NCBI GenBank assembly: GCA_043228905.1
Contig: JBHGNT010000012.1
Coordinates: forward strand, 8,246,001-8,310,000
Source of the DNA: Azolla caroliniana
Taxonomy: Eukaryota; Plantae; Polypodiophyta
Reading direction: 5' to 3'
Length of the DNA: 64,000 bases
Under the pieces are notes generated by a model. It was not told the DNA's origin. It saw only the letters and a program-made list of their open reading frames with translations, and did no database searches. The position numbers were made by a program, and so were the translations under genes. Shown piece after piece: positions 1-35,019 of the stretch; within the stretch, counting starts at the first letter, position 1; the number at the start of each line of letters is the position of its first letter.

Positions 1-614
1 CCCCTTAAGTAATCGGTGTTGAATTCTATGTAGCCTCATGTTCCCGATGTTATAGGGAATTTTAAAAGCAACTCAACAACTCTTCATAGTAAGTCAAAGG
101 TAATATTCCACTTGCTAAGAACATGACAATGCCAGATGGTCCTTAACAAGTTGCATATTGGCAATCAAGAATGCATCTTGTTTGTCGCCATTGAGACAAA
201 TACTTTAGTCACAACCCTCGCAAGTTTGCCTTTCCAAATTTTGATAGACAAAGGCTCCCACAACATACCTTGCATATATCAATTGCAATTTGGCGATCTG
301 AACACAAAAAATTATATTGTTTAACGCTCACTTGTCGAGGAACTCTTTGAAAATTTAGAGGCTTGTTGACACAGTCGTCGTCAACATTTTGATTCGTCAT
401 GATTTGTATCTACTTTAATATTTCTTATTTTACCTAAGTTAAAAGGCTCTATCGAAAAAAGTGGCGTCGAACTTTGCTCTCGATCATCGTTTGACTTTAT
501 ATGGCACCGTTTATTATTAACATGGTTATATTGCTCGATTAAGAATAACAAGTTATCAGATAATTTCAAAGGCTCAATACAAAATAGAGAATTTTTACTC
601 GAGTTCGAGGACAT
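1..614 (-). pseudogene. N-terminal region of a putative DNA transposase (Sola-like / DUF7869-type Cys-rich N-terminus), decayed, runs off the window start
   Basis: Joining minus-strand frames across frameshifts and stops gives MSSNSSK...CKVCCGSLCLSKFGKANLRGL*LKYLS/LNGDKQDAFLIANMQ...QVEYYL*LTMKSC*VAFKIPYNIGNMRLHRIQHRLLKG. This fits the CC-x3-CL-x2-F...R..Y.SL...QD.FL...Y...C..AF...Y.I...RL pattern I recall upstream of the catalytic core in Sola-type/DUF7869 proteins. The catalytic domain is not in the window. Confidence 0.5.
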
Positions 615-748
615 TTTGAGTAAGGGGAGCTAAGATCACAGGAGTTCAAAATAGGCTCAAGTTTGGTTCTATAATAAGCACCATGTCCAAAAGCTTCTTC
701 TTTTTTAATTTAAAAAAATTTAAAAATAATAAAAATAAAAAACAAAAC

Positions 749-755
749 TATATAA
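749..755 (+). promoter_or_regulatory. TATA-like box in the short divergent intergenic region
   Basis: TATATAA about 125 bp upstream of ATG 876, between two divergently oriented genes. Confidence 0.3.
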
Positions 756-875
756 GGGAAAGTCATCTTCTCATTGTCATTATCGCGTTCAAGCAACAGA
801 AGAGCACAGGAGCACGGAGGAACCAAGACTTCCAGTTTTCGCCTCCCCAATCAAGTTGACACCAACGTCAGCAAC

Positions 876-3800
876 ATGAACAAGGGAAAGAAGATTGTCG
901 GGTATGTTTTCCAAACTATATTTTTAGATTCTTCCAAGATTCCTCAAAGATCCCTTTTTGTGTTTTTTAATTTCTGCATCTAGAATTCGATGTTTTCGAT
1001 CGAGAACTCGATGCACATCGAGTTCTCGTTGAAAGTCCCCCTTTTCAACAGGAACTCCATGCATTGCATCGAGTTCTCATTGAAAGAGAACACCCCTTCA
1101 ACAGGAACTCGACGCAGTGCATCGAGTTCCCGTTGAAAGGGTGGAGAACTAGATGTTCCCTACATCGAGTTCTCGTTGAAAGGGGGGACTTTCATGATCA
1201 ATATACTAGAATTGGTCACTTTCTTGCTATTTTTGGGCATTTTTCTCAATTTTTTTTATGTAACATTACCACCCTAAACGGGTGATTTTCGCCTACTTTT
1301 GTGGAACTTTACCTTAGTTTTCAAGTTTACGTTATTTATTTTTAAGATTATCGATATATCATTGTGTTATTACTTGTTGTATTCAGTGAATCACGACAGA
1401 AGGTCCCATCCATCAAATTGAAGACTCCCTCCCCAACAAAAAAAACATCTCACACAATTCCCAAGCCTAACTCAGGGAGAGTTGATGATCACGCAAGCAA
1501 ACACACCACCAAAGTCTGCCAATAAATCAAAACCGAAACATAAAGTATAAGAAAAGGCAGCAACCTAAGGAGGATGAGCCCGAGGTACTCGAGTTCATGG
1601 AAGATAAGGAGGAAGATACCGAGCTCGAAGTTATTCCTCCAGGGTTCCACATTGCATCGGGAATGCTCACCTCAAGGCAGAATCGAATCAGAGAAAACAT
1701 TGTAAACACGAAGCTTGTCCGTAAAAGACAACTATTTCACTTGCTGGTCTCCTCTATTTAGAGGCCACCCATTGATCCCGAAACAGGAAGACGAGCTCTA
1801 GAAATAAGAGAGCCACATTCAGTGCATGTGCAAAACTTAAAAAGCAAAATGAAGATAAATCGACATGCCACTGTAGTGTCATTCTTAGTAATGGTAGACC
1901 CTGATCAATGCCCAACTGTTGCTGAGTTTAAGTACAGTTCGGCTAACGACGACACATACTACATGATTGGAGGATCCCACTTTGTTGAAGCTCGACGTCA
2001 ACTTGTGAAGGAGTATCCTCTTACCCCATTCTTCAAATATGCAGAATGTAAAGTGTACGTTGGCCTTACACATGAAGAAGCCAAGTTGCTTGCTTGGGAT
2101 CATAACAATGATAATGACTATAGACAGAAGATGTCATGTATCGAGCGCATCAGGTTCTTCCATCAAGAGTACCTTGATGCGTTGCAAAAATTTGGTCCTA
2201 GGCTGCATCTTGGATTGCGATGACAATGTCTGCTTGAAGTGGGGATAACAATTGACGAAAAGCATGAAGTCTGAAGGCCTGAGGAAATATGACTCATGGT
2301 TTCAACTTGTGTTCAGAACAGGGGAGGCGTGGGACCTCGAAGATCAATTTTTTAGCATGTGGGAGCGAAAAGAAATAAAGGGTCAAAGATCAAAGAAGGC
2401 TAAGCTCGACCCTTAAGTGGAGATAAAGTCTAAGTCACGTAAAAGTGACTTAGTAATTGAAGAATTAGCCTAGGATATGAAGCTACATCCTTGGCGGTCA
2501 TTGCAAGGAATCAAAGATGACAGATTATTAATATCTATATTATCAATAGTGGTCGCCAAGGAGTTCAGTCTTGATGAAATGGTCACAGAGTTTCAAAAGT
2601 GAGTATTCTATGTGATGACTTATTTTCATTGTATTGATTTGTTGATTTGCTCTTCATTCTAACCTTACTTTCTTTTAATTTTTAGCCATAAGGTTTATAT
2701 GAAGATACAAGCGCTGATGATGAAAAAGTTGTCCCTGCCTACGTTGGAAGAAGTGTAGCAATCGTGCCCAAAAACATCATCGTACAAGGCTCTTGAAGAA
2801 TTCTTCATCGTGTTTAGAGAATGGGTATTGTATGTTTTACAAATATTAATTGATTTTAGGATAATGGGTTTCTTCTTATAACATTTATAATTACAGAAAC
2901 CACCTTGTTCAAAGAAAATGTGTGACAGCAATGAAGGCATACCAAGTGCCTTCATCACCCATTTGGAACGAGCTAAATATGAGAAACGAATGACAAAAGG
3001 AAAGGAGCTCGAGGTGCCTGAGGACTCAAATACTGTGAAAAGCTTTTTGCACAAGGTTGATCCTTTCCGACAACTATATTATAGTTTATATAATGGTGAT
3101 GTGGCTAATATGCTTGACATATTACCCAAGCGACATTATACATTGCTCGTGGCAGATATACCGTATGGATTCCGAATAGCAGGCTCTACATACGACGATA
3201 TACCATACAAATATCCGCAAATAGAGAAGATGGTTAAAGACTTTGCAAAGCTGACCCTGGCTCCATTATGACGAATCGTTATATTTCATAGTATGGGTCA
3301 AGCTTTATCGGTCACTACTGCATTGAAGTCGAGATGCCATGCCACCGAGCACGTGCATTGGTAAGCTTTATGTTACTATATATTTAATGTATAGATTCCA
3401 TGGTGCTTACTACATATATATTAACTTGTTTCGATTGAATTATAAAATAGGGTTAAAACGAACATAACTCGTACCCCGGGTGATCGAATGGTGAGCGTTG
3501 TGGAGCATTTGTGTGTGGGCTATTACGATGCTATTTCTAAGAAGAAGGCTCGGGCACATGTTAATGAGCGGAACGTTGTCAACTATATCATGTGCCCAGC
3601 TATAATGAAGAAATTGTGCCACGTGTCTGGTGACAAGAGTCTTGTAAACCCATATCAAAAGCCCCAGCGATTGATTAATCGATTGGTCGAGTTGTTCTCA
3701 AACCTTGATGATTGGGTGCTCGACTTATTTTCTTGAACAAGTAATCTCATAAGTCTGATCAATTTTTCTTAAAATAAAATATTATTTCATGTCTTTGTTT

Positions 3801-4179
3801 TCTTACTTTTGCATGTGTGATTGTTTATTTAGGAACAACGACTTCGTGCGCTCTTAAATTGTTTAGGAACTGTGTCACATTAGAGAAGGACCCCGAGCAA
3901 GTCAATTTTATAAAGATGAGGATCCAAGGCATCTAGGATTGTCCCGACCAAGACCAAGAGGTTGGGGCAAGGCATATCAACGAAACTGAGATGTTTCAGC
4001 TGACCTCAAGAGAGCCGATGGAACCTATAGACGAGGAAGGAGGGGACCTTGTAGACCTTTAAGATGCACCAGGGTTTGATCAAATACAAGATTTAGCTCT
4101 GGAGACAAAACATGTAGATGCAACACAACTGTCAGTTGATCTTGGAGAGCAACCTGTTCCAGACCTCCTAATGGAGTGA
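876..4179 (+). pseudogene. Spliced ParB/Srx-like domain + beta-class N4C/N6A DNA methyltransferase fusion gene (decayed)
   Basis: Exons 876-901, 1387-2598, 2686-2824, 2897-3360, 3451-3740, 3833-4179 with phase-consistent GT-AG introns (exon 1 is the least certain). ParB-like part: IREPHSVHVQNLKSKM..FLVMVD..YYMIGGSHFVEARRQL..CKVYVGLTHEEAKLLAWDHN..KMSCIERI. MTase part: LYNGDVANMLDILP..YTLLVADIPYG (motif IV DPPY-like), WVKTN, EHLCVGY, NPYQKPQRLINRLVELFSNLDDWVLDLFS*T(R)TT (motifs X and I, FxGxG), RNCVTLEKDPEQVNFIKMRI. Several stops and frameshifts. Confidence 0.88.
995..1182. repeat. Array of four imperfect palindromes, consensus TTCAACGAGAACTCGATG-n-CATCGAGTTCTCGTTGAA
   Basis: Units at about 995-1035, 1043-1086, 1097-1139 and 1144-1182, inside predicted intron 1 of the methyltransferase gene. 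Confidence 0.85.
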
Positions 4180-5082
4180 TTGTATACTACTTTGTATTTG
4201 TAACTAAAAACTTGTAACATTAAACTTGTTTTGGAATATAAGATTTTTTCGTTTGAGTACCATTTCTTTACACTATCTGATTGGTGTGCAAACTTTAAGT
4301 GTCTATCATATATTTGTAAAGGTTGACTCGCAAAGTATGTGGTTAAGTATAATTTTCATTGAATAGATGATGATGAACTTATCGATTGTATGACAAATGT
4401 TGGTTATAATTGTTTCTTGATTAATATAATTGAATGTAGCTTTATTCTAGGATTTATGTTGTCTTTAATCTTGGTTATTTAGTTTCGAGTGAACGCAATA
4501 ATATTAAGTCAATGTTGTTGCTCACTTGATAATACATTCAGGTTGTTCATGTATGATTGGGATATAATGTTCGTAGTAGTTTTTGAGTATGTGTGGTATA
4601 TAATGTTTGTAGTAGTTTTTGGGCATGTGAATATGTTTCTAATTTTATCCAAAAATGTGATTTGCTAATTTAATATAACAATCTTTATAGGAGTTAGAGA
4701 CAAATATAGCAACAAAATTGTATTTCTAAAATTGTTAAGTTGGATTCAAATTCAACATTATGTAAAGTGAAGCATATTACAATTACAGTTGGAAGCATTC
4801 CCATAATCTACCCTAATATTAGGATAAATTTGTGTATGAATTGAGAAAATATAGGTTAAATTTGACATCGTCGTCACTGTCGTGGCGTGTTTCTTCTCTT
4901 TCTTTTCTTGACGTTGTCGAGTGCCGTTTTTCTTGGCGTGTCCATGGGTGGTTTCTTTTGGCGTGCTCATCGTGTGCTACATCGTCGCGTGCTACAAAAT
5001 GCCAATGTGACTGCGACGTACACACAAACTCGGCTAAGTCTCGAACCCATTTATTTTATCTTTTTTTCTTATTGACACCACA

Positions 5083-5895
5083 ATGACGTCTAAATGAACT
5101 AAGGAACATAAGGATATACAAGACGAGGGTATAAGTAAGGAGGACTTTTTAGATATGTTGAATCGTTTAACAAAAATAGAGATGGATATGAAAAAATGGG
5201 TGAAAGACGCCGAAACCCACAAGAAAAAAGATAGAGAGCAAAAAGACGCCCTCAAGGCCAAAATAGAAAAACTTAAAGTGGAAAACACCAACCTTAAAAA
5301 ACAACTTAATGACATCGAGGTATCTCGAGAGGACGGTGAAATATCCTCCATAGAGGATATAAAGGACGAGATTAAAAAAGTTAAAGAGGAAGTTAAAAAT
5401 AACATAGAGTTAGCTCAAACGGGTTGGGTAGACGTGGCTAAAAGAAACATTAAAAAAGAAATAAAAGATGAAAATATTGTTAATACCACCCTTGAAGAAG
5501 AGAAAATGTGTCACGCCCGACGCTTAAATGTACGTGTCACTGGGCTCAAGGAAGGTGCATCCCCATACGAGAATGCACAAACACTTGGGAAAATGTTAGG
5601 GTACATAGAGGCCCTACCTATCACCAAAGCATGGAGGGTCGGACGTGACACAACTAGGAAGAGAGCTTTAGTCCTTCAATTTAAAGACTTAGACTCTAGA
5701 ATCACTTTCTTTAAGAAGAGACCAATTCTTCGAGGATTGGGTGGGGACCCTATCTATCTCGCTGAAGACCTCACTAAGATGCAAATTGAGCATCGCAAGA
5801 GTTGTATGCCACGAGTTATGCAAGCTCATAAAGAAGGGCATCGCGTCTTTTACCAAGACGGGCGAGTGATCATAAACGATCGCACTACTAATTGA
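5083..5895 (+). pseudogene. LINE ORF1 (coiled coil + RRM-like + C-terminal domain)
   Basis: ATG 5083 is in frame with ORF 5155-5895 through one TGA. Coiled coil, then RRLNVRVTGLKE and IYLAEDLTKMQIEHRK...GRVIIND, typical of CR1/L2/RTEX ORF1. Confidence 0.8.
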
Positions 5896-5931
5896 CGGTG
5901 TGTGGCCTATGTGACAGAAAATGCACTTAGG

Positions 5932-8900
5932 ATGACCTTATGGAATTGTAACAGTGCACTCTGGACACACCCTGGCCGCCTAGAGGAGATATTAAAGGTA
6001 TCAGATATACTTTTCTTGGTAGGAACACACCAAAGCCCAAATAGAGGACTCCCACGGGTCGAAGGATTCCGTTAGGAGTTCGCTTTTAGACAGACCTCAC
6101 GTCGACACACTACTAGGGGATCTGGAGGTGTCGCGATATTGTTTCGTAGAGAGCTACATAATAAGATAGAAATATTGAGGACAGACCCAGAAGCTCGTTT
6201 TATGTGGGTGAAAGTTTCCACAAGCAAGGACCAGGCAATATTTTTCGCCATTTGTTACTTTCCCCCAAAAGGATCCCGTTATAATATTGTTGGCTTGGCA
6301 AGATTAGTCGATGAAGGAATGCCACATGGGCCTTCTCCATACGAACCTCTATTGGATGACATAATCCGATATCCTTCCCAAGGAGAAGTATTCCTTGTAG
6401 GAGACTTCAATGCGAGAACCCAATCCCGACAATGCACATTATTTCAGATGAATAGAAACCTAGAAATGGTAAATGTCGATCCTTTAGACATAGGCAGAAC
6501 ACGTAGATCAAAGGATCAAGGTGTGGACGCCACGAGCTTTGGCCATCATCTACTCAAACTTGGCAATCGGCACCGGATGGTCATATATAATGGTTTAGCC
6601 AAGTGACCGAGCTCAGAAGAGCTCACATGTTTCTCACATGGAGGAGGGGAAAGCACAGTTGATTATCTAATAGGACGCCCTGAAGCTACCCACATGATTA
6701 ACTCCTTCCGGGTGGCCCCATGCCCTATTGGCGCAGACCATAGTTTCTTATACTTTGAGCTAAAATGCGATATCTCTAAGGTCACCAACTCTAGTCAACC
6801 ACGTCATCACACCACAATACATTTCACACATGAGCTCTCTAACATATACTCTCAACATGTTCAGGCCCATGTCTCCTCCCTTGATCCCTCCCTACCTTTA
6901 GAAAGCCTTAGTACGAAACTCACACACATCCTTCACTCCGCAACAGCTAGTAGTTTCCCATATACAAAACACTCAAATCAAGGTAGATCAGGATCTATGC
7001 CACAAAATAAATGGTATGATGAGGATTGTAGGGACTTACATAGACAACTTACAGTATCACAACTCAATGGTAGTATTACCTCAATACAAGCTCGCAAAGA
7101 AATGCGCAAGATGACACGTCGTAAGAGACGAGCATGGCAGGCATCCCAATATTGGGAACTCTACCATATGCTCATGAGTAGCGATTGCGCCACGGCATCG
7201 AAGAGACTACGGGAGCCAAGACCATAAATACCCATCGAAGATCCCGAAACCTGGCACACATATACAAAGAGACTTTACCAAATCCCAAACCAACCACCCA
7301 TTCCAATGCCTTCCACACCCTGACCTACCACGGGGAGACTTTTCACAACCTCTAGGGCCGCGAAGGTCATAAAGAAATTACAACATAGGAAGTCCATGGA
7401 CCACACAGGATTGCGAGCATAACACATTATATATGTGAGAGAGTGCCTAGCTCCCTTGCTAACTCTAATCTTCAATCGTGCCCTTGCGGAGGGTTTTCCA
7501 CCACAGTGGACTATGAACACAATGGCCCCCATACATAAAGGGGGGGACCCCATGGACCAAAATACATATAGGACCATTATGATAGGTTATACCCTTGCTA
7601 AATTATATGGTGCAGTAATGGAAGTAGAGCTTAGTGATTATATGGAGACCCTAAAGCTTTGTGCACTTGAACAAGCTGGCTTTAGATGAGCCTTCTCCAC
7701 CATTGATCATATCTTCACACTTAGATGCTTAATTGACCAAACTAAGGCTCGCAAGAAGAAATTATATTGTTGTTTTGTGGACTTCTGCAAGGCCTTTGAC
7801 ACAGTCCCTAGAGAGCGGTTGTTTGATAGGCTTAAAAGCTTGAGGATACCAAATGACATGGTCTAGGCCATCTATGCACTATATGAACAAGTGTTCGGGT
7901 GTGTCTGATGCCCGAGTGGTCTATCCAATTGTTTCACTAGCACTATTGGTGTAAAACAAGGTTGCCCCCTATCACCGACACTTTTTGGGATCTACATTGA
8001 TGAGATCACAAATTTTATTACTCGTAAGGGAGGCAACGGAGTAGTCCTTAGGGATACGTAGGTTCGTATCTTGCTCTATGCGGATGACATAGTTTTGATC
8101 TCTGAATCCGAACACGACCTACAAAGGAACCTTAATGCCTTAGATGACTTTTGTGCACAACGAGGATTGGTAGTGAATCTAGGGAAAACTAAAGTCCTTA
8201 TCTTTCACACATCGGCCCAAGTTAGAGCTAAGTGTCACCTAACTGTCTCCCATAGCCCAGTTGAGGTGGTTGGATCATACATCTATCTCGGAGTCACTTT
8301 CAGTGCTCGCTCAGGTAAATTTTCGATGACACAGGCAGCGAAGGATAGCTTACGAGAGGACATGCACCCCTCTCACTCCTAGAGAGACAATGTCACCAAG
8401 CATACTTTCAAGAGCCACGGACTAAAGGGTGGCTCTTTGACTCATTAGTGACCCCCTCCCTCATGTATGCATCAGCGGTTTGGGCTCCAGGATTACCATC
8501 GTTCATGTGGACACAATTAGAGAGACCATTGGTGATGATGTTATCACGCCAACTCCGAAGCAAATCGACAGTACCACATGACATTATTAGGGTTGAGTTC
8601 ACGTTACCCCCAATGTTAGTAGAGGAACTTTTCCAACTTGTAGTCTTTATTCATAGGATACATAGCCAACCACATGATAGAATAGTTCATCAAGCCTTTA
8701 AGGCCTCTCAATCATTGTATGAGTCTGGCTATACTACCTCATGGTATGGCATGATGGTGAGTTGGCTTCTTGCGAATGGTCTAGACATTAATAACCTACC
8801 TCCCCTTAGGTACAACCACACGATTGATAACACTTTAATCTCTCATGAGGACCGCAATAAAGTAATACGCCAAGAAATATGGCAAAATTTACAGTCGGTA

Positions 8901-9624
8901 TAAATGGATCACCCCACGAGAGCCACTCCCATCTAAAATGTTGTACTATAAGGAACACTTCATGCACTTCTCTGAGTTAGGTTTTATCACACGGCCAAAA
9001 TATCTAGATGTATACTTACCACATGCACTAAGGGTTGCCATTGGACAACTTAGAATATCATCTCACCAACTTGAGATTGAGAATGGTCGTACTAATGGAG
9101 TCCCTAGGGAGGAAATAATATAATATAGGTTATGTCACATAGAGATAGAGGATGAGTATCACTTTACATGCAAGTGCCCAACCTACGCCGAGATAAGGGC
9201 AAAATACCAAGACATACTTGGTTCCTCTCCCACCCTCCCCAAACTATTAAATACTCTAGATATAAAGAAATTAGGCAAATACATTCTAGAGCTAAAACAA
9301 CATAGAGAGAATAAGTTACAAAATGTTGACAATAATGTTGCTAATGTTCACCAACATGTAACAAATGAAGTTTTTCAGGAACAGGGGGAGACAATGAATG
9401 TCGACACACCTGCACCACTCGGCCTTTCCCTTGATGAGGCAGAAAACCAAAGAAGAACCAGACGTCCTCGGGTGTTGGGTTTCAAAGCAACTCAACGTGG
9501 TGTGGAAGCAATAATGAAAATAAGGGAATGTGAGCTACACCGCCTAGAAGCCATGGCTAGGGCACTCTCTACATCAAAACCCTTTGACCCCCCACTTCTT
9601 TTCGAGAGGCTTAGGTGGAAATAA
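5932..9624 (+). pseudogene. LINE ORF2: AP endonuclease - reverse transcriptase - C-terminal CCHC finger
   Basis: TLWNCN, GSGGVAIL, CYFPP, VGDFNART, STVDY, ADHSFL; WYDEDC; EQAGFR, FVDFCKAFDTV, GVKQGCPLSPTLF, LYADDIVL; LRISSHQLEIENGR..LCH.EIEDEYHFTCKC. Many in-frame stops. Confidence 0.92.
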
Positions 9625-9814
9625 AATTAGGCTTAGTGTAAAGTCACTTCCTTTATCGAGTATACCACATATTGTACACTACTAGAACTATTTTAGCTTA
9701 AGTTCTATGTTTACTTTATTTTATTTTAGTTATGATGACTGGATAAATACTCATTTTGTTGTAAACCAATTGTCTCATGGGCCAATTTTGGCCTTAGAAG
9801 ACGTTTAAAATATA

Positions 9815-9895
<81 letters not shown>

Positions 9896-10016
9896 ATCTA
9901 TCTCTCTCTCTTTCGCGAGTCTGAGTATCACACTTTGATACAATGCTCTGCCTTTGATCATATTTGACCATGCTTTCCACATCTCTTCAACCGAGCCCAA
10001 TCTTTGCATGAATTCC

Positions 10017-10468
10017 ACGGTTTAAGTGATTTGGTTTAAAGGTTTATAGGTTTTTGGCTAACATTTTTTATCCCTTAAATGTTTATGTAATTTAATGGTT
10101 TTTATTGATTTAATTCACTTAACTTAAATGTTTATTTAATCTAATGGCTTAATTAATGCTTATTTATTTATTTAATTACTTCAACATAAATGCTTATTAA
10201 TTTAGTGTATTTCTATTTATTTAATTTTTTTATTAGTTTGGCTTAAATGTGATTAGGTTTAAAAATTTTATTAAATGACTCGGTTTGGTTTCAACTTTTC
10301 CCTAAACGGTTTTGGTTTACTTTTTCTTAAATGGTTTGGTTTAATGGCTTGAAAGCTCATAAACAGTTTGGTTTGGTTTTTGTTTTATATAAATGGTTTG
10401 GTTCAGTTCAATTTGGTTTCAAGGCAAAGAAACTGAACCAAACCAAAACCAAACCGGGTGCATTGCTA
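10017..10468. mobile_element. Fragment of a non-autonomous DNA transposon, probably hAT-like, with GGTTT/AAACC subterminal repeats
   Basis: AT-rich core and clustered GGTTTGGTT/AACCAAACC repeats ending AAACCGGGTGCATTGCTA (TAG-starting terminus on the minus strand). Only one end is seen. Confidence 0.4.
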
Positions 10469-10935
10469 GTTTTGTGAAAGCTTGTGTCTTTTTCTTCTTA
10501 GGTTTTTTGGTTTTCTTGTGTGTGGTATCAGAGTGAATATTAAGCCACTTCTCCTTCCTCGTCTTTGATTTATTTCATTAAGAGTTTCTTGCTTGGGTGA
10601 AGGTGGAAGTGACAAATAAAGGAGAATCTTCAAGAGGACATGAAAGAGGGTGTGGAAAGTAATGAGAAAAAAGGCTTGACAACCATTGCTTGTGAGGTCG
10701 GGCTACTGGAACTCCAGAGTTTCTTCTAGTTTGCTCCCTTCTTTTGCAACTTTTTTCCTTGTAAACATCTCTTATATTCCCCATTTGTAACTGTTTGTTT
10801 TATACCCTTTTCTTCTAGAGGGGAACATATTTTGTGAATGAATTAGTGGATGTTATCTTAATCATATTTGTTGTACTAATCAAGTTTATTTATACCTAAT
10901 CTTGTGATTAGCCACTTGAGCACTATTGTAGTAAG

Positions 10936-11199
10936 AGATAGATAGATTATATTATCGTCTTTGGAGGTCAAATATGACCTGTGAGACCAAAAATATTACA
11001 TTTCACGTGATACGTGTGAAAGTGAGTAGTGACTCTCGATGTTCAAGAACTTTACCAATGAATGTTGCAATCGGGCGTGTACATTGTGGTTGTGAGAGGA
11101 ATTCATGCAAAGATTGGGCTCGGTCGAAGAGATGTGGAAAGCATGGTCGAATATGATCAAAGGCAGAGCATTGTATCAAAGTGTGATACTCAGACTCGC

Positions 11200-11200
<1 letters not shown>
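10936..11200 (-). mobile_element. 3' fragment of RTEX-like LINE family B
   Basis: (GATA)n tail plus GGAGGTCAAATATGACCT hairpin; same sequence at 23197, 30271, 33066 and 60881. Confidence 0.85.
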
Positions 11201-11240
<40 letters not shown>

Positions 11241-11245
<5 letters not shown>

Positions 11246-11387
11246 TATATTTTAAACGTCTTCTAAGGCCAAAATTGGCCCATGAGACAATTGGTTTACA
11301 ACAAAATGAGTATTTATCCAGTTATCATAACTAAAATAAAATAAAGTAAACATAGAACTTAAGCTAAAATAGTTCTAGTAGTGTACA
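11241..11387 (-). mobile_element. 3' fragment of LINE family A
   Basis: Reverse complement of 9673-9819, next to (GA)n. Confidence 0.9.
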
Positions 11388-13269
11388 TCTTGATTTTATT
11401 TTTTCCCCTATTTCACTACATTTCTTTGGACACCCATATAACAACGGAACCTAAGCCCATGACAAATTTGACTGAACAAAAGTTCTCAAATTTATGACTT
11501 CAATGCTATGGTGTAAGGGAATGAGGAAAACAACCTCATAAATTATTAGGAAGCGTAGGCCCAACATTTAGTTGACATGTTGACATGTGGAACTTGAGCA
11601 CATGAGATTATCAACTACTCGACAATGTTTGGCCAAACCACAATATTACTAGGAGCCCAACAAGGTCAGAGCCCAATGAAATGGCAAATGAAGTAGCTCA
11701 CTTCGAGGATAACAAGGTTATTGCCTTGACGTGTGCTATATATATTTCATGCCCGAGAGCAAAAAATCTCCAAGCAAGGAGATGGAACAACCAAACGAAA
11801 TGAAGACCTCCAACACGAGCGCCTATGAGAAGGGACAAAACTAGGGTCACATGATGACCACATTCATTTCATCATCAAATTGAGACACTTGTTGAAAGGT
11901 TACTCACAAGGTCAAGCTCAATGTGCAAATGGGGCTCATAGCGGACAAAAAGTGATGGGGAGCGAAGATAACAAAAGAAGTGCTAAGATCAAAGGATATA
12001 AGAGATGCTAGAGATATGTGCATAATTTTTAAAGAGTTATTTATGCTCTTAAGAAATGTGAAGAAAACACCTTTCTAACTTTGGGAAATGTTCAAAAAAC
12101 AAAACAAATGGGTGAAACAGACTTGGTTAACTAGGTGGACTACCAAGCACAAACTCGACACTGAGTCTAGGCTTGCACATAAACATTCCCCCTTTCAAAC
12201 CTAACATATGAGCACGATTGGCTACAACTTCTACGACCAACAACTTGCATGCTTGGTAAAAAAAAAAATTAGTCCCCTTGCTACTAGCCCATCTTTTAAA
12301 GCACTTGATGAGAATCCCTGTCTCTAGCCTTCTAGGGAGATCAAAATATCATCTCTTTCATGTTTTTGAACCCCTAAAATTCTCACACCCCCCCCATTGA
12401 GTACAACATAATTGGTAATTGACATATTTGATGAATCATTACCACACAACCAACCATCACTTTTAATGAGATTACTGGAACGTAATAGTGTAAACTGCCA
12501 CGACGACAATCATTTCAATTTACAAAATCTCTTAACAAAATCATTTCAGTCTATGCTGAAATATATGTTCAAATACACCCAGCAATTGGACAATAAAAAC
12601 CTACTAATAGAATCTTGCTATTGAATCTCATTGCACTTCTGCTACACAAAAAGGTGTAGCCTAATAAATGAACTTGTGTTCTGCTAAGATAATTGTGTTC
12701 CTAAGAGGAATTAAATAGTGAAGTTGTGTGATTACATAGTTATTGACATGCATTAGATTACATTCAGATTTTACAGTAGTATAAAAATAAATCACTTCAG
12801 AAACCATTCAGTTAAAGAGTAATCAATAACAGAAACAACTGATGGATATTATATTGCATCATTTTAACATAGTTATTAGCTTTTATTCAGTAAATCATCT
12901 CTGGCTAGACTATAGCCGTTATAAAAAAACTTCCTGTATATATATTCACAATAGAAGAATGATACACAAAGATACTTTTATTTTAAATTGTTTGCTCCTA
13001 TTTATTCAATTAAGCCTCATTTGTTACACTTATAACAAAAGAAGGGGGATGTTATACAAAAGCATATACAAGCAAAATGATCATGAGTTGGGTTGATTTC
13101 TAGATTTGTACACAATACTCTGAACATATAACATACCAAAACTTGGAGCAGCCAATTTGTATCCATAAATATATGCCCAATGGGATGACGGCACACCTTG
13201 ACAATCATTAAGCTTCCATCTCAGATCTAGCATGACATGTGTGGAAACACGCATAGATAGTCCATTTCT

Positions 13270-13790
13270 TCATATAGGTATGTGATGGTGCCATGCCATT
13301 CGTCACCATCAAGATCGTTGAAAGAAGCAATGTCATGTCATTACTATTACCACCATGAAAGAAGGAAAGCCATGTAATCATCATCACCACCATTTAAAAA
13401 GAAGCAAGAAGGCCATGTTGACACCATTGAAAACAATAAGACCATGTCACCACCATTGAAAGTGACAAAACAATGCTATGCAATGATCATCACCATCTTT
13501 GAGAAAAACAACGCCCATTCAACGATACGATGTGAAGCCAAACACCATCATTACCATTGATAGAACAAGAGTCATACCACCATCATTGAAAGAAGCAGTC
13601 CCATGCCACCACTACCACCATTGAAACGAAACAATGTGATGTCTTCACCACCACTACTAAAAAAGCGGTGCCATGTCATTATAAACACCAAATGGTCACA
13701 TGCCATGTTGCAAACAAACTGCAACATGACATAGGGCACCAACACCAGAAAATTGCCATCATCATCAAAAAAAGGAATCGATGGCAACAA
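13270..13790. repeat. Degenerate tandem repeat region (CCATGTCACCACCATTGAAAGAAGCAA-like units)
   Basis: Recurrent CACCACCATTGAAA / CCATGTCA motifs at roughly 30-45 bp spacing directly after the BPS1-like stop codon. Confidence 0.5.
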
Positions 13791-13796
13791 GCCACG

Positions 13797-14891
13797 TCAT
13801 CGTGAGTGACTATATATATCGAGAAGGGCAATTCGGCTAGCAATCAAGACCTTGAAAACTTCCCCAACACTTGCTTCCAATGGATCAATCCCATTCCTTA
13901 ACTCTCTTCTCGCCATCTTGAGCGATTCCACCGCATCTCTAATCTCTCTCGCTTGCTCTTCACCAACAGGAAAACATCTCGAATTTAGCATACTCTCCAC
14001 CTTCCCATACAACAATCTCACTGCAATATCGGTCTTATCCAACTCTTCTAGCAATGCATTTGACCCTTTAGCTTTCTTTCTATCAATCTCTTCTTTGACT
14101 CTTTGTTGGAGACTAGTTAAAGAGAAAGTCCACGCAGATTGTCCACCAACCGAAATAGAAGAAAGAGGGCGCCTCGGCTTAAAAGACAGAGCACTAGCCA
14201 AGACCCCACAAATGAAAATAGTACTTACTTGAGCAGCATAAATAACCATGAAAAAATTACCTTTAGAAGCAGCTTCCATATTTAACTTCTCACCCATTCT
14301 TCTCAGCATAGAGCTACAATTCTCAAGCTTAGATCTTCTTTGACCCATTTGATTCATCTCCTCTTCTTTCCTTTTTAAGGCCTCAATACATCTAAGAAGA
14401 GAATTTTTAGATCGTCGCAGGTGGGGTTCATAACCAACTGTTTGTGGTGAGAAGCTATGTATAGCAAGATCAACATAAGAATCGTAGGTTTTTATATCTG
14501 AGATGGCATCTCGGAGAGTTCGGCAAATGTCAAGAAGTTTAACACTGTCATCTAAGTATTCATCTAACCATTTGAAATCACCTTCTGCAAGGGCCCGTTG
14601 AAGATCAGGGATAAATACTTCTGCATATCCATGTGTGGAAAGAACCACTTCTTCCATAGCTTGGCATAGCCATGGAATACTCAAATATCCACCTTCATCG
14701 GTTGACTTCAATCTCTCCAACTGCTGACAGAGATGTGATTCGAATGACTCCAAGCCCGGATTATTACTACTCCCTCGAGAAGAAGAAGATGTATTTGCTG
14801 TTGTCGGGCTTGAAGCTTTAAAAGAGAATCGTGGCGATGAAAAGCTCTGCAGAGCGGCGCCAAGCGATGAGAAGAGGGAAGAACTAGTCAT
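13797..14891 (-). CDS. BYPASS1/ROH1-like protein (DUF793 family), single coding exon, 364 aa
   Basis: Intact ORF from ATG 14891 (MTSSSLFS...). Motifs LESFESHL..L..LK, YLSIPWL, KWLDEYLDDSVKLLDIC, W..SL..LQ.RV.EEI, LLEEL, GIDPLE..V.EVF..LI.SR..LLD. Confidence 0.85.
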   Translation of the reverse strand: MTSSSLFSSLGAALQSFSSPRFSFKASSPTTANTSSSSRGSSNNPGLESFESHLCQQLERLKSTDEGGYLSIPWLCQAMEEVVLSTHGYAEVFIPDLQRALAEGDFKWLDEYLDDSVKLLDICRTLRDAISDIKTYDSYVDLAIHSFSPQTVGYEPHLRRSKNSLLRCIEALKRKEEEMNQMGQRRSKLENCSSMLRRMGEKLNMEAASKGNFFMVIYAAQVSTIFICGVLASALSFKPRRPLSSISVGGQSAWTFSLTSLQQRVKEEIDRKKAKGSNALLEELDKTDIAVRLLYGKVESMLNSRCFPVGEEQAREIRDAVESLKMARRELRNGIDPLEASVGEVFKVLIASRIALLDIYSHSR

Positions 14892-16674
14892 GGCGATGGA
14901 TCGTAGCAGAGAAAAAGCGAGATGGGTTTCCAAAGGAAGCAGCAAAAAATCGGATGAGAAATTCAATGTCTGTCTGTCTGTCTGTCTGTGATCGATGTTC
15001 TGTGATTTAGGGCTGCTTCTGTTATTTGTGAATTTTAGGGCAGAAATTCAATGAGCAGTGCAAGTATATATACATATATGATATACATACATATACAAGC
15101 CTTCGGATTTTTATTTTTATTTTTATTTTTTTTTTATTTTTTTTTTTTTTGTTTTTTTTTTTTTTTTTTTATTTTATTTTATTTTTGTTTATTTTTTTAT
15201 TTTTTTATTTTATTTTATTTTATTTTTCCATTAATTATTTATTTCTGTTTTGCTTTTTTTTTTATTTCTTTTTCAAACCTCCTCTCAAAATCTGCTTGTA
15301 CATGCATATTGACATCAGTTTTCACGCACCAAAATCTGCCTTCCATTCCCTCTATATACATAATACTATTCTTATTTCCAATTCTTTCACACACACACAC
15401 ACGGACGGACGGACGGACGGACGGAGGTGCTCTGCCTGCCTGCCTGCCTGCTCTGATCTCGCCTCAACTCTTCACGGAACGTGTGTCTCCGTTTACCTAT
15501 TATCTGCCTCTAGCCGACCGGAACTGATAACTATTCCCATCATCCCCTCAGTGTTACTGGCAATTAACACTGCTTTTCTACCAGCTCGACTCGATTGTTC
15601 TCACCACCCCCCCCCCCCCCCTTATCTATTGGATTGTAACAGTTCGGCTCTTGCTATGTATCATCATCATGTCACCTTTGTTTGTGTTGTAGTGGCGAGC
15701 CGAGAGATCATTCCCTCCCTTTATGCAAGCAATGGTAGTCGTTCACATGTGTAGCAGGTCTCGTATGTCCCTAGTTCAACAGTTATTCCCATTTGTTGGC
15801 ATGTCCCAAGGTAGCTGGCCACATTCCCCATCCCAACGAGCATTGTCTGGTTGTACCAAATCCCCCGTTTTGTGTGTTGGCGTGGTGTCATTAGGCATAC
15901 ATATTCTCTTATATTCGTTGTCACGATGTGGCACTTGCAAAGGTGAGAAGGCACGACAAAGTTAGGTTTCACACCTGTCTTTTTAATTTTCCATTGTTCT
16001 ATTCCCCCCCTCCCCCCTCTCTCCGCAACACGCATGCACGTTCCCTAGAAAAAAAGAAAATAGATTACCCAAAATACCCCTCAAGGCTCTCCCCTTATTT
16101 CCTAAAGTACGCTTCCTTTATTAACTAAAGTTCCCCTTACTATTCTACTCCCTTTTAATTTCATAAAGCCACCTACCCTTTTAAGCATAAAGTTTCCAAT
16201 TTACTCCCCCATTCTTTGGTATACTTTAAAATATACTCATTTAAACTCTTTCTCTCTTACACACACACACTGTATACATACTCCTACACATACGCGACTA
16301 CATTTACACACATACATGCCCTATACCACTTACACATACCAACTGCACATTCATGGACAAAATCAAATACCCACACATATATATTTGAATACATACACAA
16401 ACATCAAAACCCTATACACTCTTAGGCATATATATAATCACGCACACTTACACATATTTACACATTTTCATGCAACTTTATGTTTGAATAAATTGTCGCG
16501 GCCCGATAAAGCTCTAAGGTCACAAGCCAATTCATACATGACTTATTGATCGATTCTCAAGAAGATCAATACATTGTAGTTGATTCTCAAGAAGATCGAT
16601 TTGTGACAAATCAAACTTCTTCTTCTTGTGCAAGCACCACCATGCCAGACTCCATCACTGAGCTCGACCAAATC

Positions 16675-18027: not shown

Positions 18028-18689
18028 TGTCGTGATGCGGGGTGTGGGGTGTGCACAAGAGGATTTTAGTTAAACTAGGATTATTAGAAAGGTTGATTGG
18101 TAGATCGAAGATGTGAAGAGAAAGACATTTTGTGACTTTATTATTATTATTATTTAGGAAAGAAAAGGCATAACGTGTGGTAAAATAAAAAAGGGTAAAG
18201 ATAATGCAAACAAGGGGGAGAGGGAAGAGAGAGACACAGAAGCTCTATCGGATTGGGAGGCGAAGAAGCTAGGGTAGCAAATCAAGAGGGTGTGTAAGAC
18301 CAACATCAACAAGAGGTGATGTGGTCGTTGATCGTTGGGAGATTACACCAAAACTCGAGAATTTCCCCTTGAAGCTTCACTCTTATTCTTTTCTTCTTCA
18401 TCTTCTTCTCCACAATATACTTGCTATTTTAGGGTTTTATTTACATCCTTTTTTGCGAAATTTAGGGTTCTTAGCTCATGATTAATTCCTGAAAAATTTG
18501 CATCTTGTGATAAAAAAACTCCAAAATCTTGTAAACCCTATTTTATAAAGGGATTTTCTTTCATAATCCAACGTTTTTAGCCTACACAAAAGACTATCTA
18601 GACTTAATATTGTAAAATCCATTCATAATCTCAGATTCTTTGGGTTAATTACGTGAAAATCTTGGGCGTAACTCACTGTTCGAATCACA
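18028..18689 (+). mobile_element. Possible 3' LTR of another LTR retrotransposon
   Basis: Purine tract GGTAGGGGTGGA immediately before TGT, and the segment ends in TCACA. No partner LTR was found. Confidence 0.35.
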
Positions 18690-19212
18690 ACTACCTTCGA
18701 CTCTATAGAGCCTTCGGGTTTGACCTACATTCGACTTTGGCGATCTTTGGGCTCTTTAGAGGCTTCGAATTAGACGATCTTTCGGCTCTGTAGAGCCTTC
18801 GAGTTTGACGAATCATCTGACTCTTATGATCATTCGACACTAACGAGCCTTCGAGTCATCCATATGCTCTGGTTCAAGTCCCGGGTGGTCCCGCTCGAGT
18901 AGCACACCTATGCACACGTATTTTATTTACTCTGACTACCTACCTCTCTAAGGAAGAACTCTGTAGAGAGGAGACACATCAAGTGTTTTATTGCCACATG
19001 AAAAAAAGGTGTGTTTTTTGGATTGGGGGTATTCCAGTAAATACCCAAAAGTATAGGAAGGGGTATTTGGGCGATTTCCCAAAAACCCCAAAAGCTCTCT
19101 CTGTTCTTCTTCTTCTTCTTCTTCTTCTAGCAGTAGTGATCACAACCTCCTCTTCTTCTTCTTCTTCTTCTTTCAATCACAACCTCCTCTCTGTGTTTTT
19201 TTTGGCTTTACC

Positions 19213-22200
19213 ATGAATTTGGTTTCCATGAAAGCTTGGGGTCTCAGGAGCACCTTCTTCTCTTCTCCTTCTTCTTTAACTCTGAATAGCTTTCTTCTTC
19301 TTCGTAACAGACCCGGAAGGAGAATATGCAGATTCTCCACATCCTCCATCACAGCCTCCTTGCAGATTGATTTGGTAAGTTGGACTGCATGCTCATTACT
19401 GCCAAAATTTCTCTGCTAATAAGCTCTCTAGACCCGTAGCGTTATCGAATTTACTGTGATGGCATTATGCATATCCCCCCTCCCTGTGATAGAGGTCCTT
19501 TGAAGCGATTTCACGTATAACTGTACATGAAAAGTTTGATTGTTAATTTATATGTTTTGTCTTAACCATTTTTTGGATACTTGGTCGAGCATTCCTCCAA
19601 AATTTGACCTTCCATTTATATGCTTTAGCTTGAATTACTTTGACAGGTACCTTGCCTGAAGGATAACTATGCGTACCTGTTGTATGATACTGAAGAAGGT
19701 GTCAGTGGTGTAATAGATCCTTCTGAATATGGAACCGTTGCGAAGGCATTGACAAAAAAGAATCTTCATTTGGACTATATTCTTAATACGCATCATCATT
19801 GGGATCACACTGGAGGTAACATCGATCTGAAGAGCAAGTATAAAGCAAAGGTACAAAAGAATATTCCCACTGTCTACATACTTCCCTGTGTTCAAGACCT
19901 ATCCTTCTTACTGTTGAGTTTTCATGAATAAAACAAAAAAGTTGTAAGTTATAGTTGCAAAACATGTAGAAATACACTTTTGAGGGAGAATATAGACTCA
20001 ACCAATCTAAAAGAGAGACCATGCATCTGGAGAGAAGATGTATGAACCTCACCTTTTCTAGACAGTATCAATACTTCTTACCATAAAATATTCTGCTTTT
20101 CTAATTATATCCAGACGAAAGAGGAATGTTTAGTACAGATTGGAATCTACAGAAGTGCTTGCAGGGTGGGGGAGTGTCTTATCTTAAGCGTCTATAAAGG
20201 GAAATGTGCTCAACATTAGTCAAGTTACGCCATGCATCATGAAAAACTTTGCTAGCAAAATCAAGTTTTCCTCTTGCAATGGTGTTGAGCCTTTTTGCAT
20301 GTATCCTTTTCTTCTCATTCACACCAATTTAATATACAATGGTGTTATAGTTTGTTAAAATGCATGTAGGTGGTTGGCCCCGCTGCAGACCAAACGCGAA
20401 TCCCTGGGATTGATATCGCTTTACAAGATGGGGATACATGGATGTTTGGAAATCACAAGATGGTGGTTTTCGATACCCCAGGGCACACACGAGGTAAGTC
20501 TGTACTCATTATATACTATATAATAATGTATGTTATATATACTACGTAGGATAAATGCTAATAATATTCCTGATTCCATGAGATGCGATAATTTCTTATA
20601 TCATCAGTGAGCGATCAAAAGCCTTCCAATTTTCGCAAAGAGTCTTTATTTGGCCCTTTCCTTGTCAAATTATTATTGTTTTTGTCTTTTTATTATTATT
20701 TACATTTGGGCATTTTTTTTATTGTTTTCAACAGGACATGTAAGCTTCTATTTTCCAAGCTCGAATGCTATTTTCACTGGTGATACGTTATTCTCACTAT
20801 CGTGTGGAAAGCTCTTTGAAGGCACGCCTCAACAGGTAGGTAACACAAACCTTATTATAGTAGAACTAAACAACCCAACAATAACCATCTTCCATCTAAT
20901 CATATGTATTTTTTCTCACTGTAGAATCACAATGTATCAAGCAAATTATTTTATCTGTTACGATAATGTGTATCATGTTTGATTTTGTTAATTCATTTAT
21001 GGTAAAAACAAAACAAAATCGTCTTATGCTCTCAAGCATGTTAAAAAGCAGTATTCATATATTGTATGGAATTCCATATCTGAAGAGAGGAATTCCATAT
21101 GAAAAATCTGGGAAATTTTATTTCAGATGTGGAGCTCACTTTCAAAGATAATGGCCTTGCCAGACGAGACTTCAATATACTGTGGACATGAGTACACATT
21201 GGTAAGTTGTTTGGTTGCTCTTTTTTTAAGAAAAAGTTCTTCACAACATTGACTAATGCTCAATTAACCTCGATATATCGCTGGAATTGACCCTATTCTG
21301 TTTTTCTTTCTTTCACTTTTTTCTGTCCTTGAGAATATATCTATAAATTCTCAAATGCTAGTGAGAATTATGTAAAAGTGGCTCGGTTTTAGATACCTAG
21401 GAAATTGAGTAGCTAGCTTAACCGTGTCGAATATTTGCTGAATACCTAAGTCTAATGATTATAGAATGTTTTTGTTAGGATTTTCTTCTGTTCTTTTAAA
21501 AACTATAAATGAAGGTTTTATATATATCCTTCTAGTTTTGTGGTTGTACATACATTTTAACAATATTTGATTGTCATTGCTTCTGATTTGTGTTTAGCAA
21601 TGCTTCATGTTCTGATTGCTTTTGACCAAGAGAACTAATCATGAACTACTATATAAAATACACACAACAATGTAATATCCTTGTAATCAAGAGGTTACAT
21701 ATTGTAACATAGAACAGAGCTTACTTAAGATACACAACCTTAATTTCAAATCCATGCTCTGGCCGCAGTCGAATGCTGAATTCTCACTAACACTCGAGCC
21801 CAACAATGAAAACCTTAGGAACTACTATGACAAAATCAAGAAGCTTCGAGAAGCAAACCTTCCGACAGTAAGTAGAATATTTCATTATTGTCACAGTTTG
21901 TGTTTTCAATATCAAATCAAAATGATCCTAAATTTCTACCTCACCTAATGGAACGAGATCGCTGATTGGTTAATAATGCTTGTAAAATGCATTTCAAATC
22001 CAAGCGTTCTAATAAATTTAGTGGCGTTAGTGAGAATAAAGCTTCTAAATCTATTAGAACATGGAGAAACTTGTGTGGAACTACATTATTTGAATAGAGT
22101 TTTAGATTTTTGTTTGTATATAATGCTTCATTTTTTTTTGTTGCCAGATACCTACAAGTGTGAAAACAGAAAAAGCATGCAACCCGTTTCTTCGTGTATC

Positions 22201-33858: not shown

Positions 33859-35000
33859 ATGGCCATTGTTAGTGCTCAAGAATATCAATCCGTTTTCTCC
33901 GAGCTACAATGCTTGAAAGAGAAGTTCCTTGCTTTGGAAGAAGAAAATCAACGGTTGTTGGGGGATTTCAACAAATCTCCTTAGAAAAGCAGCAGACGCA
34001 ACAACATGGGGAACTAGTGGTGCGCGTGCAACAACTTGAAGCAACCTTAGTAGCGATACAACAACAAGGACCCAGTACGCAAGGGATTCATAAAGAACCC
34101 AAGTTCGGCCTTCCCATGAAATTCGATGGAATGTGATTGTAGTTTAGAGGATTCCTTAATCAAGTACGATTAGTCATTCAAATGCATCCTTCTTGATATC
34201 CCACCGATGCATCACGAGTGGGATTAGTAGGCACTCTACTTAGTGGCACGACTTTGGCATGGTTCGCCCCCTTGTTAGAAAAAAGCTCTCCCTTGTTAAA
34301 TAATTTCAAAGAGTTTATTACTGAGTTTAAAGCCTGTTTTGGAGATATCGACAGTGTTAGAACAACAATCAACAAAATCCGAAGATTGCGCCAAGGTGAG
34401 CGGCTGACCTCGGTTTATGTTGCGGATTTTCGTCTTCTCGCCACTGATATTCCCTGGAATGACCAGGCACTAATGGAGCAATTTCGTTTTGGCCTACGTA
34501 ATGATGTTAAAGATTTACTCTTAACTTTCCCCGAGGAGCCAAAGTCATTGATAGAAGCAATCAGTCGCGCGGTGCGATGCGATAATCGCCTCTTCGAACG
34601 ACATTTGGAAAGTCAGTTCCAAATGCCACGGACAAGATCGGAGCCCACCTACGCTTCAATCGTAGCAAAGCCTTTCCCAAGGGAGTCATTCAATACGCCT
34701 TCAACAAATACTCCGACTCCAATGGAAATTGACACCACACGTCGCCGTGGACCACTATTAGAAGAAGAAAAGCAGCGACACAAGGCAAATCGATTATGTC
34801 TTTATTGCGGTGGACCGAGGCATATTGCAGTGAACTACCCCCATCAACAAAAAAGGTAGGTAAATCAAATATTAACCGCTAGTACTAATAGTACTAAATC
34901 TGAGTCTATTCCTCTAGGTGTGTCTCATAGTCCTAATAGCCCAAACCTTTCAAACAAATTTGAAATCCTTAGTCAACTAGAAGAAGAGTTAAACGATTAA
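33859..35000 (+). pseudogene. Gypsy gag
   Basis: EPKFGLPMKFDG, LAWFAPLLE, LRQG..SVYVADFRLLA..WNDQAL..FRFGLRNDVKD, PMEID, LCLYCGGPRH. Confidence 0.9.
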
Positions 35001-35019
35001 GTCCAGCCAAAATAGGAGC

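Follow-up and report, generated by a model that had tools for sequence, protein, structure and literature searches.

Positions 1 to about 4800 of a 64,000-nucleotide stretch of DNA from the fern Azolla caroliniana (assembly GCA_043228905.1, contig JBHGNT010000012.1, positions 8,246,001 to 8,310,000; hereafter the window) probably belong to a dead and degraded cut-and-paste transposon with two genes and with terminal inverted repeats (TIRs) at its ends, of which they form the right-hand portion. One gene encodes a DUF7869-type transposase, and the other, which diverges from it and contains introns, encodes a ParB-like domain fused to a DNA methyltransferase. The domain content, splicing, decay and divergent pairing of the window genes are directly observed, as is the presence of both genes inside one element in a liverwort (Riccia) and in a fern (Adiantum). 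A sequence-only reading had proposed that the window carries one copy of a two-gene transposon, and the complete elements of Riccia and Adiantum, each with TIRs, 4-bp target-site duplications (TSDs) and both genes, bear this out.

The two window genes indeed lie head to head, with start codons at 614 on the minus strand and 876 on the plus strand. The 261 bp between them (615-875) are presumed to form a bidirectional promoter. Both genes are as decayed as had been claimed. The right-hand gene, for the ParB-like/methyltransferase protein, occupies 876-4179 on the plus strand and is spliced. Specifically, exon 1 (876-901, encoding MNKGKKIV) begins with the ATG at 876 and is followed by a GT donor at 902; intron 1 (902-1386) closes with the AG at 1385-1386. 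A related metagenome contig in ENA (L005, 71% DNA identity to the window over 1.3 kb) has an equally short first exon and the same donor, and thus the window start codon is real and conserved. Exon 2 (1387-2598) encodes a basic and then an acidic N-terminal stretch, the domain with the ParB/sulfiredoxin (Srx) fold and a linker; it includes a ParB-like open reading frame (ORF) at 1762-2220 with a GGSH loop at 1966-1983, and it is damaged by stops at 1759, 2221, 2414 and 2471 and by frameshifts near 1543 and 2262.

The borders of the next three exons on the same strand are approximate. Exon 3 (2685-2829) carries a stop at 2756, and exon 4 (2897-3360), which encodes the N-terminal half of the methyltransferase domain, has motif IV (ADIPYGF, with DIPYG at 3155-3169) and a stop at 3269. 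Exon 5 (3451-3740) contains PYQKP at 3650-3664 and ends with the first half of motif I (LDLFS, 3719-3733), where a TGA at 3734 replaces the Gly found in the FSGSG of relatives. An intron of approximately 90 nucleotides (about 3741-3831) splits motif I, and its position is the same in the Adiantum gene (12661-12748 of locus L001). The last exon (3832-4179) opens with the second half of the motif (GTTTS, 3832-3846), encodes an acidic tail, is broken by stops at 3934 and 4060, and finishes with the terminal stop at 4177-4179. In total, alignment to relatives reveals nine stops within the reading frame, along with two frameshifts or more, and the gene is dead. Protein searches with the window gene used single uninterrupted coding pieces, each on its own.

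The left-hand gene begins at 614 on the minus strand and is represented by the 5′ part of a DUF7869-type transposase pseudogene (1-614), which comprises the N-terminal region only. Its reading frame is interrupted by stops and frame changes and is truncated by the window edge. A hidden Markov model (HMM) was built from the N-termini of the Adiantum and Riccia transposases that adjoin ParB-methyltransferase genes, together with five close homologs. When all six frames of the 64 kb are scanned, this model matches positions 13-129 on the minus strand (E 0.003), and the next best match has E > 1. A CCxxxC-L-x2-F-G segment at 173-289 on the same strand is colinear with the model in a different frame and scores weakly alone. 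Pairwise BLASTP comparison of the left fragment with the Riccia and Adiantum transposase N-termini yields nothing significant, and word-indexed protein searches with the fern transposase N-terminus and with the family alignment gave close relatives only. Judged from the profile match, the left fragment most likely represents the N-terminal end of the partner transposase, the catalytic core of which would fall to the left of base 1, beyond the window.

That the two genes occur as a pair is demonstrated in land plants, and the window agrees with this pattern. Four of the six land-plant loci with a ParB-methyltransferase gene (Riccia L002 and L004; Adiantum L001 and L018) have a divergent DUF7869 gene on the upstream side of it, encoded by the other strand. 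At Riccia L002, the DUF7869 gene (4215-8109, minus strand) encodes 813 amino acids and matches the Pfam family with an E value of 7e-55, and the ParB-methyltransferase gene (10001-13195, plus strand) diverges from it. The element extends from 2883 to 13813, is flanked by an exact TSD of TAGA, and has TIRs identical at 19 of 24 positions; the left end reads AACACCCGCTACTTTAAAG... and the right end AACATCGCCTACTTTAAAC... in an unbiased end-to-end alignment. The Adiantum element (4595-13711 of L001) holds DUF7869 ORFs on the minus strand and the methyltransferase gene on the plus strand, with an exact TSD of CCAA and TIRs that agree at 21 of 24 positions (AACACTCGGTCATC...). Thus, both elements are bounded by AACA... 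inverted ends, and in each an opposite-strand transposase and a ParB-methyltransferase share a single TIR-bounded unit. The end pair that delimits each element was ranked top by score in its locus, and a perfect 4-bp TSD at the top end pair has about a 1-in-256 chance per locus.

The Riccia and Adiantum elements terminate about 600 bp past the methyltransferase stop. By this comparison the 3′ flank at 4180-5100 of the window is expected to hold the right end of the element, the exact position of which is not fixed because the left end lies beyond the window edge. As a separate observation, Riccia L002 contains a second DUF7869 gene (18064-22101, minus strand, 759 amino acids) some 5 kb away from that element. 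Its private palindrome, TCCATGA-NNN-TCATGGA, is present in 9-10 copies, and the locus ends before any partner position.

An HMMER search of 1.84 billion representative sequences with the ParB piece returned 156 matches at E ≤ 1e-3. The corresponding gene models number 6 in Ginkgo, at least 5 in Adiantum nelumboides, 3 in Riccia sorocarpa and at least 10 in Chara braunii, and further hosts include Holothuria, four Haliotis species and the amoebozoan Clastostelium. Among the family matches whose source was looked up, no named protein is prokaryotic, and all named sources are eukaryotic. The family is multi-copy in Ginkgo and in Chara; no second copy of either gene occurs in the 64-kb window. At Chara braunii locus L020, two intronless ParB-methyltransferase copies (10007-12156 and 36067-38082) lie in equal orientation 26 kb apart; more fragments occur at 44460-46226, and the copies have been fused into a single gene model of 1825 amino acids (P0007). 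The sequences nearest to the window copy, at 59-85% identity, are short pieces from plant-associated metagenome assemblies. The ENA contigs L005-L014 (67-83% DNA identity) open inside the 5′ part of the methyltransferase gene and do not extend as far as the transposase. A tree of the ParB part groups copies by host lineage, with values of 100 for Chara, 99 for Adiantum, 97 for the window together with the ENA fragments, and 94 for Riccia.

These distributions bear on two other explanations for the window genes. The right-hand gene might be the pseudogene of a domesticated host methyltransferase that by coincidence adjoins a transposon fragment with which it has no connection. Members of this family do become domesticated, as indicated by a conserved, intron-rich, single-locus relative that sits beside an ordinary MFS gene in Haliotis. 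The window gene, by contrast, is heavily decayed, its closest relatives are multiple diverged fragments, some of them broken, and its neighbor lies on the expected strand and side and matches the partner N-terminus. We therefore regard a chance association with a host gene as very improbable. The Haliotis protein itself (P0133, Haliotis rubra locus L016) has 543-548 amino acids with at least 90% identity among abalone species. It retains the ParB-like domain, lacks the methyltransferase motifs and is encoded by a 12.8-kb gene adjoining the MFS transporter gene; it looks like a domesticated derivative.

Alternatively, the methyltransferase gene could be a passenger captured by some DUF7869 transposons, in the manner of Pack-type cargo, that is useless to the element. 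Many large DNA transposons carry accessory genes without known use, and some members of this family have no transposase nearby. Against this, the divergent arrangement and the catalytic motif persist in liverwort, in fern and, where readable, in the window; the motif-I intron is co-located in the window and Adiantum; and copies cluster by host lineage. Because arrangement, motif and intron position are retained across lineages, a useless passenger is unlikely, and we assign it a low probability, albeit somewhat higher than that of a stray host pseudogene.

The assignment of the right-hand gene as a ParB-like domain joined to a beta-class methyltransferase, first made from the letters alone, is upheld by the motif order, by the PF01555 scores of relatives and by a fold model of the ParB-like part. 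Motif IV precedes motif I in the window, and relatives keep that order, which places the enzyme in the beta class. The window piece scores 24.3 bits against N6_N4_Mtase (PF01555), below the Pfam cut-off of 26.7, whereas full-length relatives exceed this cut-off (P0023 of Ginkgo, 65.7 bits; P0050, 39.9; P0037, 33.0). Motif IV conforms to D-[IVAF]-P-[YH]-G-[FY] in Chara, Riccia, Adiantum, Ginkgo and the window. The first Pro of the canonical DPPY is therefore substituted across the family, while Asp, Pro and Tyr are retained; DPPYG is found in one metagenomic relative (P0099). The conservation of motif IV, together with the co-location of the motif-I intron in the window and Adiantum, argues for long-term selection on catalysis in intact copies.

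The predicted product is more likely N6-methyladenine (6mA) than N4-methylcytosine (4mC). The first motif IV residue is Asp, never Ser, in each member read. Among solved enzymes, the methyltransferase half of a Ginkgo relative is nearest to M.RsrI, CcrM, M.MboIIA and DpnA (E 2e-7 to 1e-3), and N4-cytosine enzymes, including rotifer N4CMT and PvuII, reach E values of about 0.1. A variant of the two-gene interpretation nevertheless deserves consideration, in which the enzyme writes 4mC or acts on RNA or protein, and the palindromes described below are transposase sites. PF01555 includes both N4-cytosine and N6-adenine enzymes, and a motif IV as atypical as D-I/V/A/F-P-Y leaves base preference unreadable from sequence. 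The Asp at the first position, the N6-adenine activity of the nearest solved relatives and the SPPY motif of known eukaryotic N4-cytosine enzymes all oppose this variant, which we judge to be rather unlikely.

Evidence for the ParB-like fold derives mainly from structure prediction. An AlphaFold model of the window ParB piece, made from a 21-row alignment, has a predicted local distance difference test (pLDDT) score of 87. When compared with 48,161 solved chains, its best eight fold matches are all of the ParB/Srx fold (Z 7.4 to 4.2), including PadC (Z 7.4), KorB (5.5), sulfiredoxin (5.4), SerK (5.3) and pNOB8 ParB (5.2). With regard to the nucleotide-binding Box II (GxxR) of this fold, a GG-x-H-x(3)-A-R loop is conserved in the ParB-like part and resembles the GGCHR of Srx and the DGQHR of DndB. 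Sequence profiles do not by themselves place the domain in the ParB fold: the only match is DUF6551, which is sub-threshold on the window piece (E 0.006, within a sub-threshold range of 0.003-0.006), and a profile of the ParB part finds no relevant solved structure among PDB sequences. DUF6551 is listed among ParB-CTPase fusion partners (bioRxiv 10.1101/2025.10.10.680097). On the basis of the model, we assign a ParB-like fold to the window domain with moderate confidence.

Every element examined contains a private short palindrome in many internal copies, and at most loci a palindrome cluster lies within or beside the 5′ end of the methyltransferase gene. The window has an array of approximately four imperfect palindromes of about 40 bp at about 50-bp spacing (975-1194, inside intron 1), with units like TTCAACGGGAACTCGATGCA and TGCATCGAGTTCCCGTTGAAAG. 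This array is shared with L005, and arrays of unlike sequence occur near the methyltransferase 5′ end at L001, L002, L004 and L019. Specifically, Riccia L002 carries TGTATGCGCGCATACA 12 times in subterminal, intronic and intergenic positions and nowhere beyond the element; Adiantum L001 has TGTATTC-NN-GAATACA between both genes; L004 has C[CT]CATGCG-N-CGCATG[GA]G; and L019 has CATCGAT-N4-ATCGATG.

Two further observations concern these arrays. The intergenic palindromes of Riccia L002 (9153-9736) and Adiantum L001 (8160-9369) have in common the core TGTAT(T/G)C..G(A/C)ATACA, a sequence similarity that hints at a conserved candidate recognition site across liverwort and fern. Within positions 1-1100 of L005, a duplication takes in the 5′ intron, the array of palindromes and the next exon (arrays near 225-300 and 821-1024), which suggests that the array region is prone to expansion.

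As for what might bind the palindromes, subterminal repeated motifs are the usual binding sites of transposases, which favors the variant introduced above in which they serve the transposase. Conversely, in the red-algal Plavaka transposons, inverted-repeat arrays adjacent to a ParB-fusion gene have been proposed as binding sites of the ParB domain (bioRxiv 10.1101/2025.02.11.637652).

The window copy is a fossil and is incapable of the function proposed here; it matters solely as a pointer to its family. In intact copies, the accessory protein would be directed to the DNA of its own element and would methylate it, guided by the element-specific palindromes that cluster in the 5′ region common to both genes, within introns and close to the termini. 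Methylation could then oppose host silencing or time transposition. Precedents exist for both outcomes: VANC of the Arabidopsis VANDAL (MuDR) transposons (VANDAL is cited in PMC12730594) is a transposon-encoded, sequence-specific factor that alters the epigenetic state of its own family, and Dam adenine methylation times the transposition of Tn10/IS10. These are analogies of mechanism only, since VANC is not an enzyme of the ParB-methyltransferase kind and Dam is a host enzyme. We put forward self-directed, palindrome-targeted methylation, with N6-adenine the likelier target and with silencing opposed or transposition timed as a result, as a tentative hypothesis that we hold to be possible but somewhat less than probable.

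Several observations weigh against our interpretation, either of the window as part of a two-gene element or of the proposed role for the methyltransferase. The sequence-only reading suggested checking whether the two genes co-occur in the same divergent arrangement. They do at the four land-plant loci described above, whereas the other two (L017 and L019) have no divergent DUF7869 gene within 10 kb, and the loci from Chara (L003, L020), Holothuria (L015) and Haliotis (L016) have no DUF7869 gene nearby, again within 10 kb. The left-hand gene of the window is visible only as about 200 codons of broken N-terminus, and the window copy displays no transposase core, TIR or TSD, its left part being outside the window. 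The match to the ParB fold is moderate, with Z 7.4 at best and Foldseek E values of 0.1-1, although the same proteins ranked first. Substitution of the first Pro of DPPY makes both activity and base preference uncertain when judged from the motif. Either the transposase or the ParB-like domain is a candidate binder of the palindromes. Finally, no RNA run was found that contains the window stretch.

A broader scenario can be imagined, in which an adenine methyltransferase guided by ParB traveled with a cut-and-paste lineage throughout streptophyte evolution (charophytes, ferns, Ginkgo), recognized the private palindromes of each subfamily and wrote 6mA on the element itself as a self-marking or anti-silencing device, and in which this lineage also supplied domesticated ParB-domain genes such as that of abalone. 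We view this as speculative and, taken as a whole, doubtful. If true, these elements would be a real source of sequence-targeted 6mA in land-plant genomes. The existence of enzyme-written 6mA or 4mC in land-plant DNA is disputed, and the family, with members in liverworts, ferns, Ginkgo and charophytes, supplies a concrete candidate writer to test, for which element ends are defined and candidate palindromes for recognition are at hand. Together with the VANC proteins of VANDAL elements, plants would then have two kinds of epigenetic factor encoded by transposons. The family also extends a recent one-paragraph observation from a brown alga to a broad and probably old group.

The window has other features as well. 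Immediately past the methyltransferase flank, an intact ORF of 246 amino acids (5155-5895) with a high Lys and Glu content matches no Pfam family; by eye it resembles ORF1 of a non-LTR (long terminal repeat) retrotransposon, and an endonuclease-like start comes after it at about 5902. The right end of the transposon may have been truncated by this non-LTR-like ORF or may abut it. An intact ORF of 389 amino acids (13800-14966, minus strand) has ROH1-like/BPS1/DUF677 domains, which are plant-specific families; this gene of the host is of an ordinary kind and marks the window as land-plant DNA. A Ty3/gypsy chromovirus is present in pieces (gag, reverse transcriptase-RNase H, integrase SH3 and chromodomain) at 34218-38615 on the plus strand, and a fragment of an endonuclease/exonuclease/phosphatase lies at 26538-27194.

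With regard to superfamily, the sequence-only reading had described the left-hand gene as resembling Sola/DUF7869-type transposases. The DUF7869 part of this description agrees with the HMM match, whereas the hallmark target of Sola1 is not seen at the two plant target sites. The DUF7869 transposases possess three invariant acidic motifs (DGMDQ, QLDN and GHTHDxxDQ). A model of their core based on three sequences has a pLDDT of 39, which is too poor for fold comparison. The 4-bp TSDs of the Riccia and Adiantum elements agree with the Sola superfamily generally. The hallmark Sola1 target is AWWT/AWDT, however, and neither of the two plant sites, TAGA and CCAA, matches AWWT, a comparison that concerns Sola1 alone among the Sola groups. 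DUF7869 is not mentioned in the literature searched.

The same reading had regarded the arrangement as undescribed and as a candidate new system, a view that the literature does not support. The 21.5-kb element Sola1-1_Ec32 of Ectocarpus carries an opposite-strand accessory gene for a ParB-like protein with a DNA methyltransferase (Dinatale et al., 2025, Genome Biol 26:320; PMC12477816), and its authors propose that the accessory protein binds and modifies its own transposon (PMC12477816). Compared by described layout, this element and the plant elements are alike in being cut-and-paste DNA transposons with an accessory gene on the strand opposite to the transposase. They differ in host, in element length (21.5 kb, whereas the plant elements delimited here measure 9.1 and 10.9 kb) and in the length of the accessory protein (1104 amino acids versus about 670-700 in the plant family). 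The Ectocarpus element is moreover labelled Sola1, the hallmark AWWT target of which is not seen in the two plant TSDs.

The Plavaka elements of Bostrychia have the DNA-modifying accessory genes PAG2/PAG3, namely an N6-methylase-SET gene and a gene that joins ParB to a 2-oxoglutarate (2OG) oxygenase (Petroll et al., 2025, bioRxiv 10.1101/2025.02.11.637652). PAG3 has an N-terminal ParB-like domain, and adjacent tandem inverted-repeat arrays are its proposed self-binding sites (bioRxiv 10.1101/2025.02.11.637652). The likeness thus includes both the transposon-borne, DNA-modifying genes and the repeat arrays beside the ParB gene, which recall the palindromes near the plant ParB-methyltransferase 5′ end. 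These elements belong to another superfamily (Plavaka/KDZ-like), however, and their ParB domain is joined to a 2OG oxygenase, with the N6-methylase joined to SET in a separate gene.

Fusions of ParB with N6_N4 methyltransferases are common in phages and prophages (bioRxiv 10.1101/2025.10.10.680097; Iyer et al., 2016, PMC4738411). Like the plant proteins, these have an N-terminal ParB fold followed by a PF01555 methyltransferase. The phage genes are prokaryotic, intronless and found in packaging or anti-restriction loci, whereas the plant genes have spliceosomal introns and reside in eukaryotic TIR transposons. Such fusions are the likely ultimate source of the plant fusion. A 2016 survey of eukaryotic adenine methyltransferases reports no streptophyte clade that combines ParB with a beta-class enzyme (PMC4738411).

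The methyltransferases DN4MT1a/b of Marchantia and N4CMT of rotifers, to which the sequence-only reading had linked the window gene, are also bacterial-type amino-methyltransferases that act on eukaryotic DNA. Marchantia DN4MT1 has a TSPPY motif, and the eukaryotic N4-cytosine enzymes in general carry (T)SPPY and are host genes, whereas the plant family has an Asp-type D-x-P-Y-G motif (D-[IVAF]-P-[YH]-G), has a ParB-fold domain and is transposon-borne. Kinship with DN4MT1 is rejected on the basis of this motif difference, and the nearest enzymes are instead those acting on N6-adenine.

Among the systems compared here, the Ectocarpus element is the one with the same two-gene design. The design is therefore known from a brown alga, and the window family extends it to land plants. 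The literature searched holds no description of land-plant or charophyte examples, of their termini or of their palindromes. The parts that are apparently unreported are the land-plant and charophyte family itself, its delimited elements, the conserved D-x-P-Y-G motif and the element-specific palindrome arrays close to the methyltransferase 5′ end.

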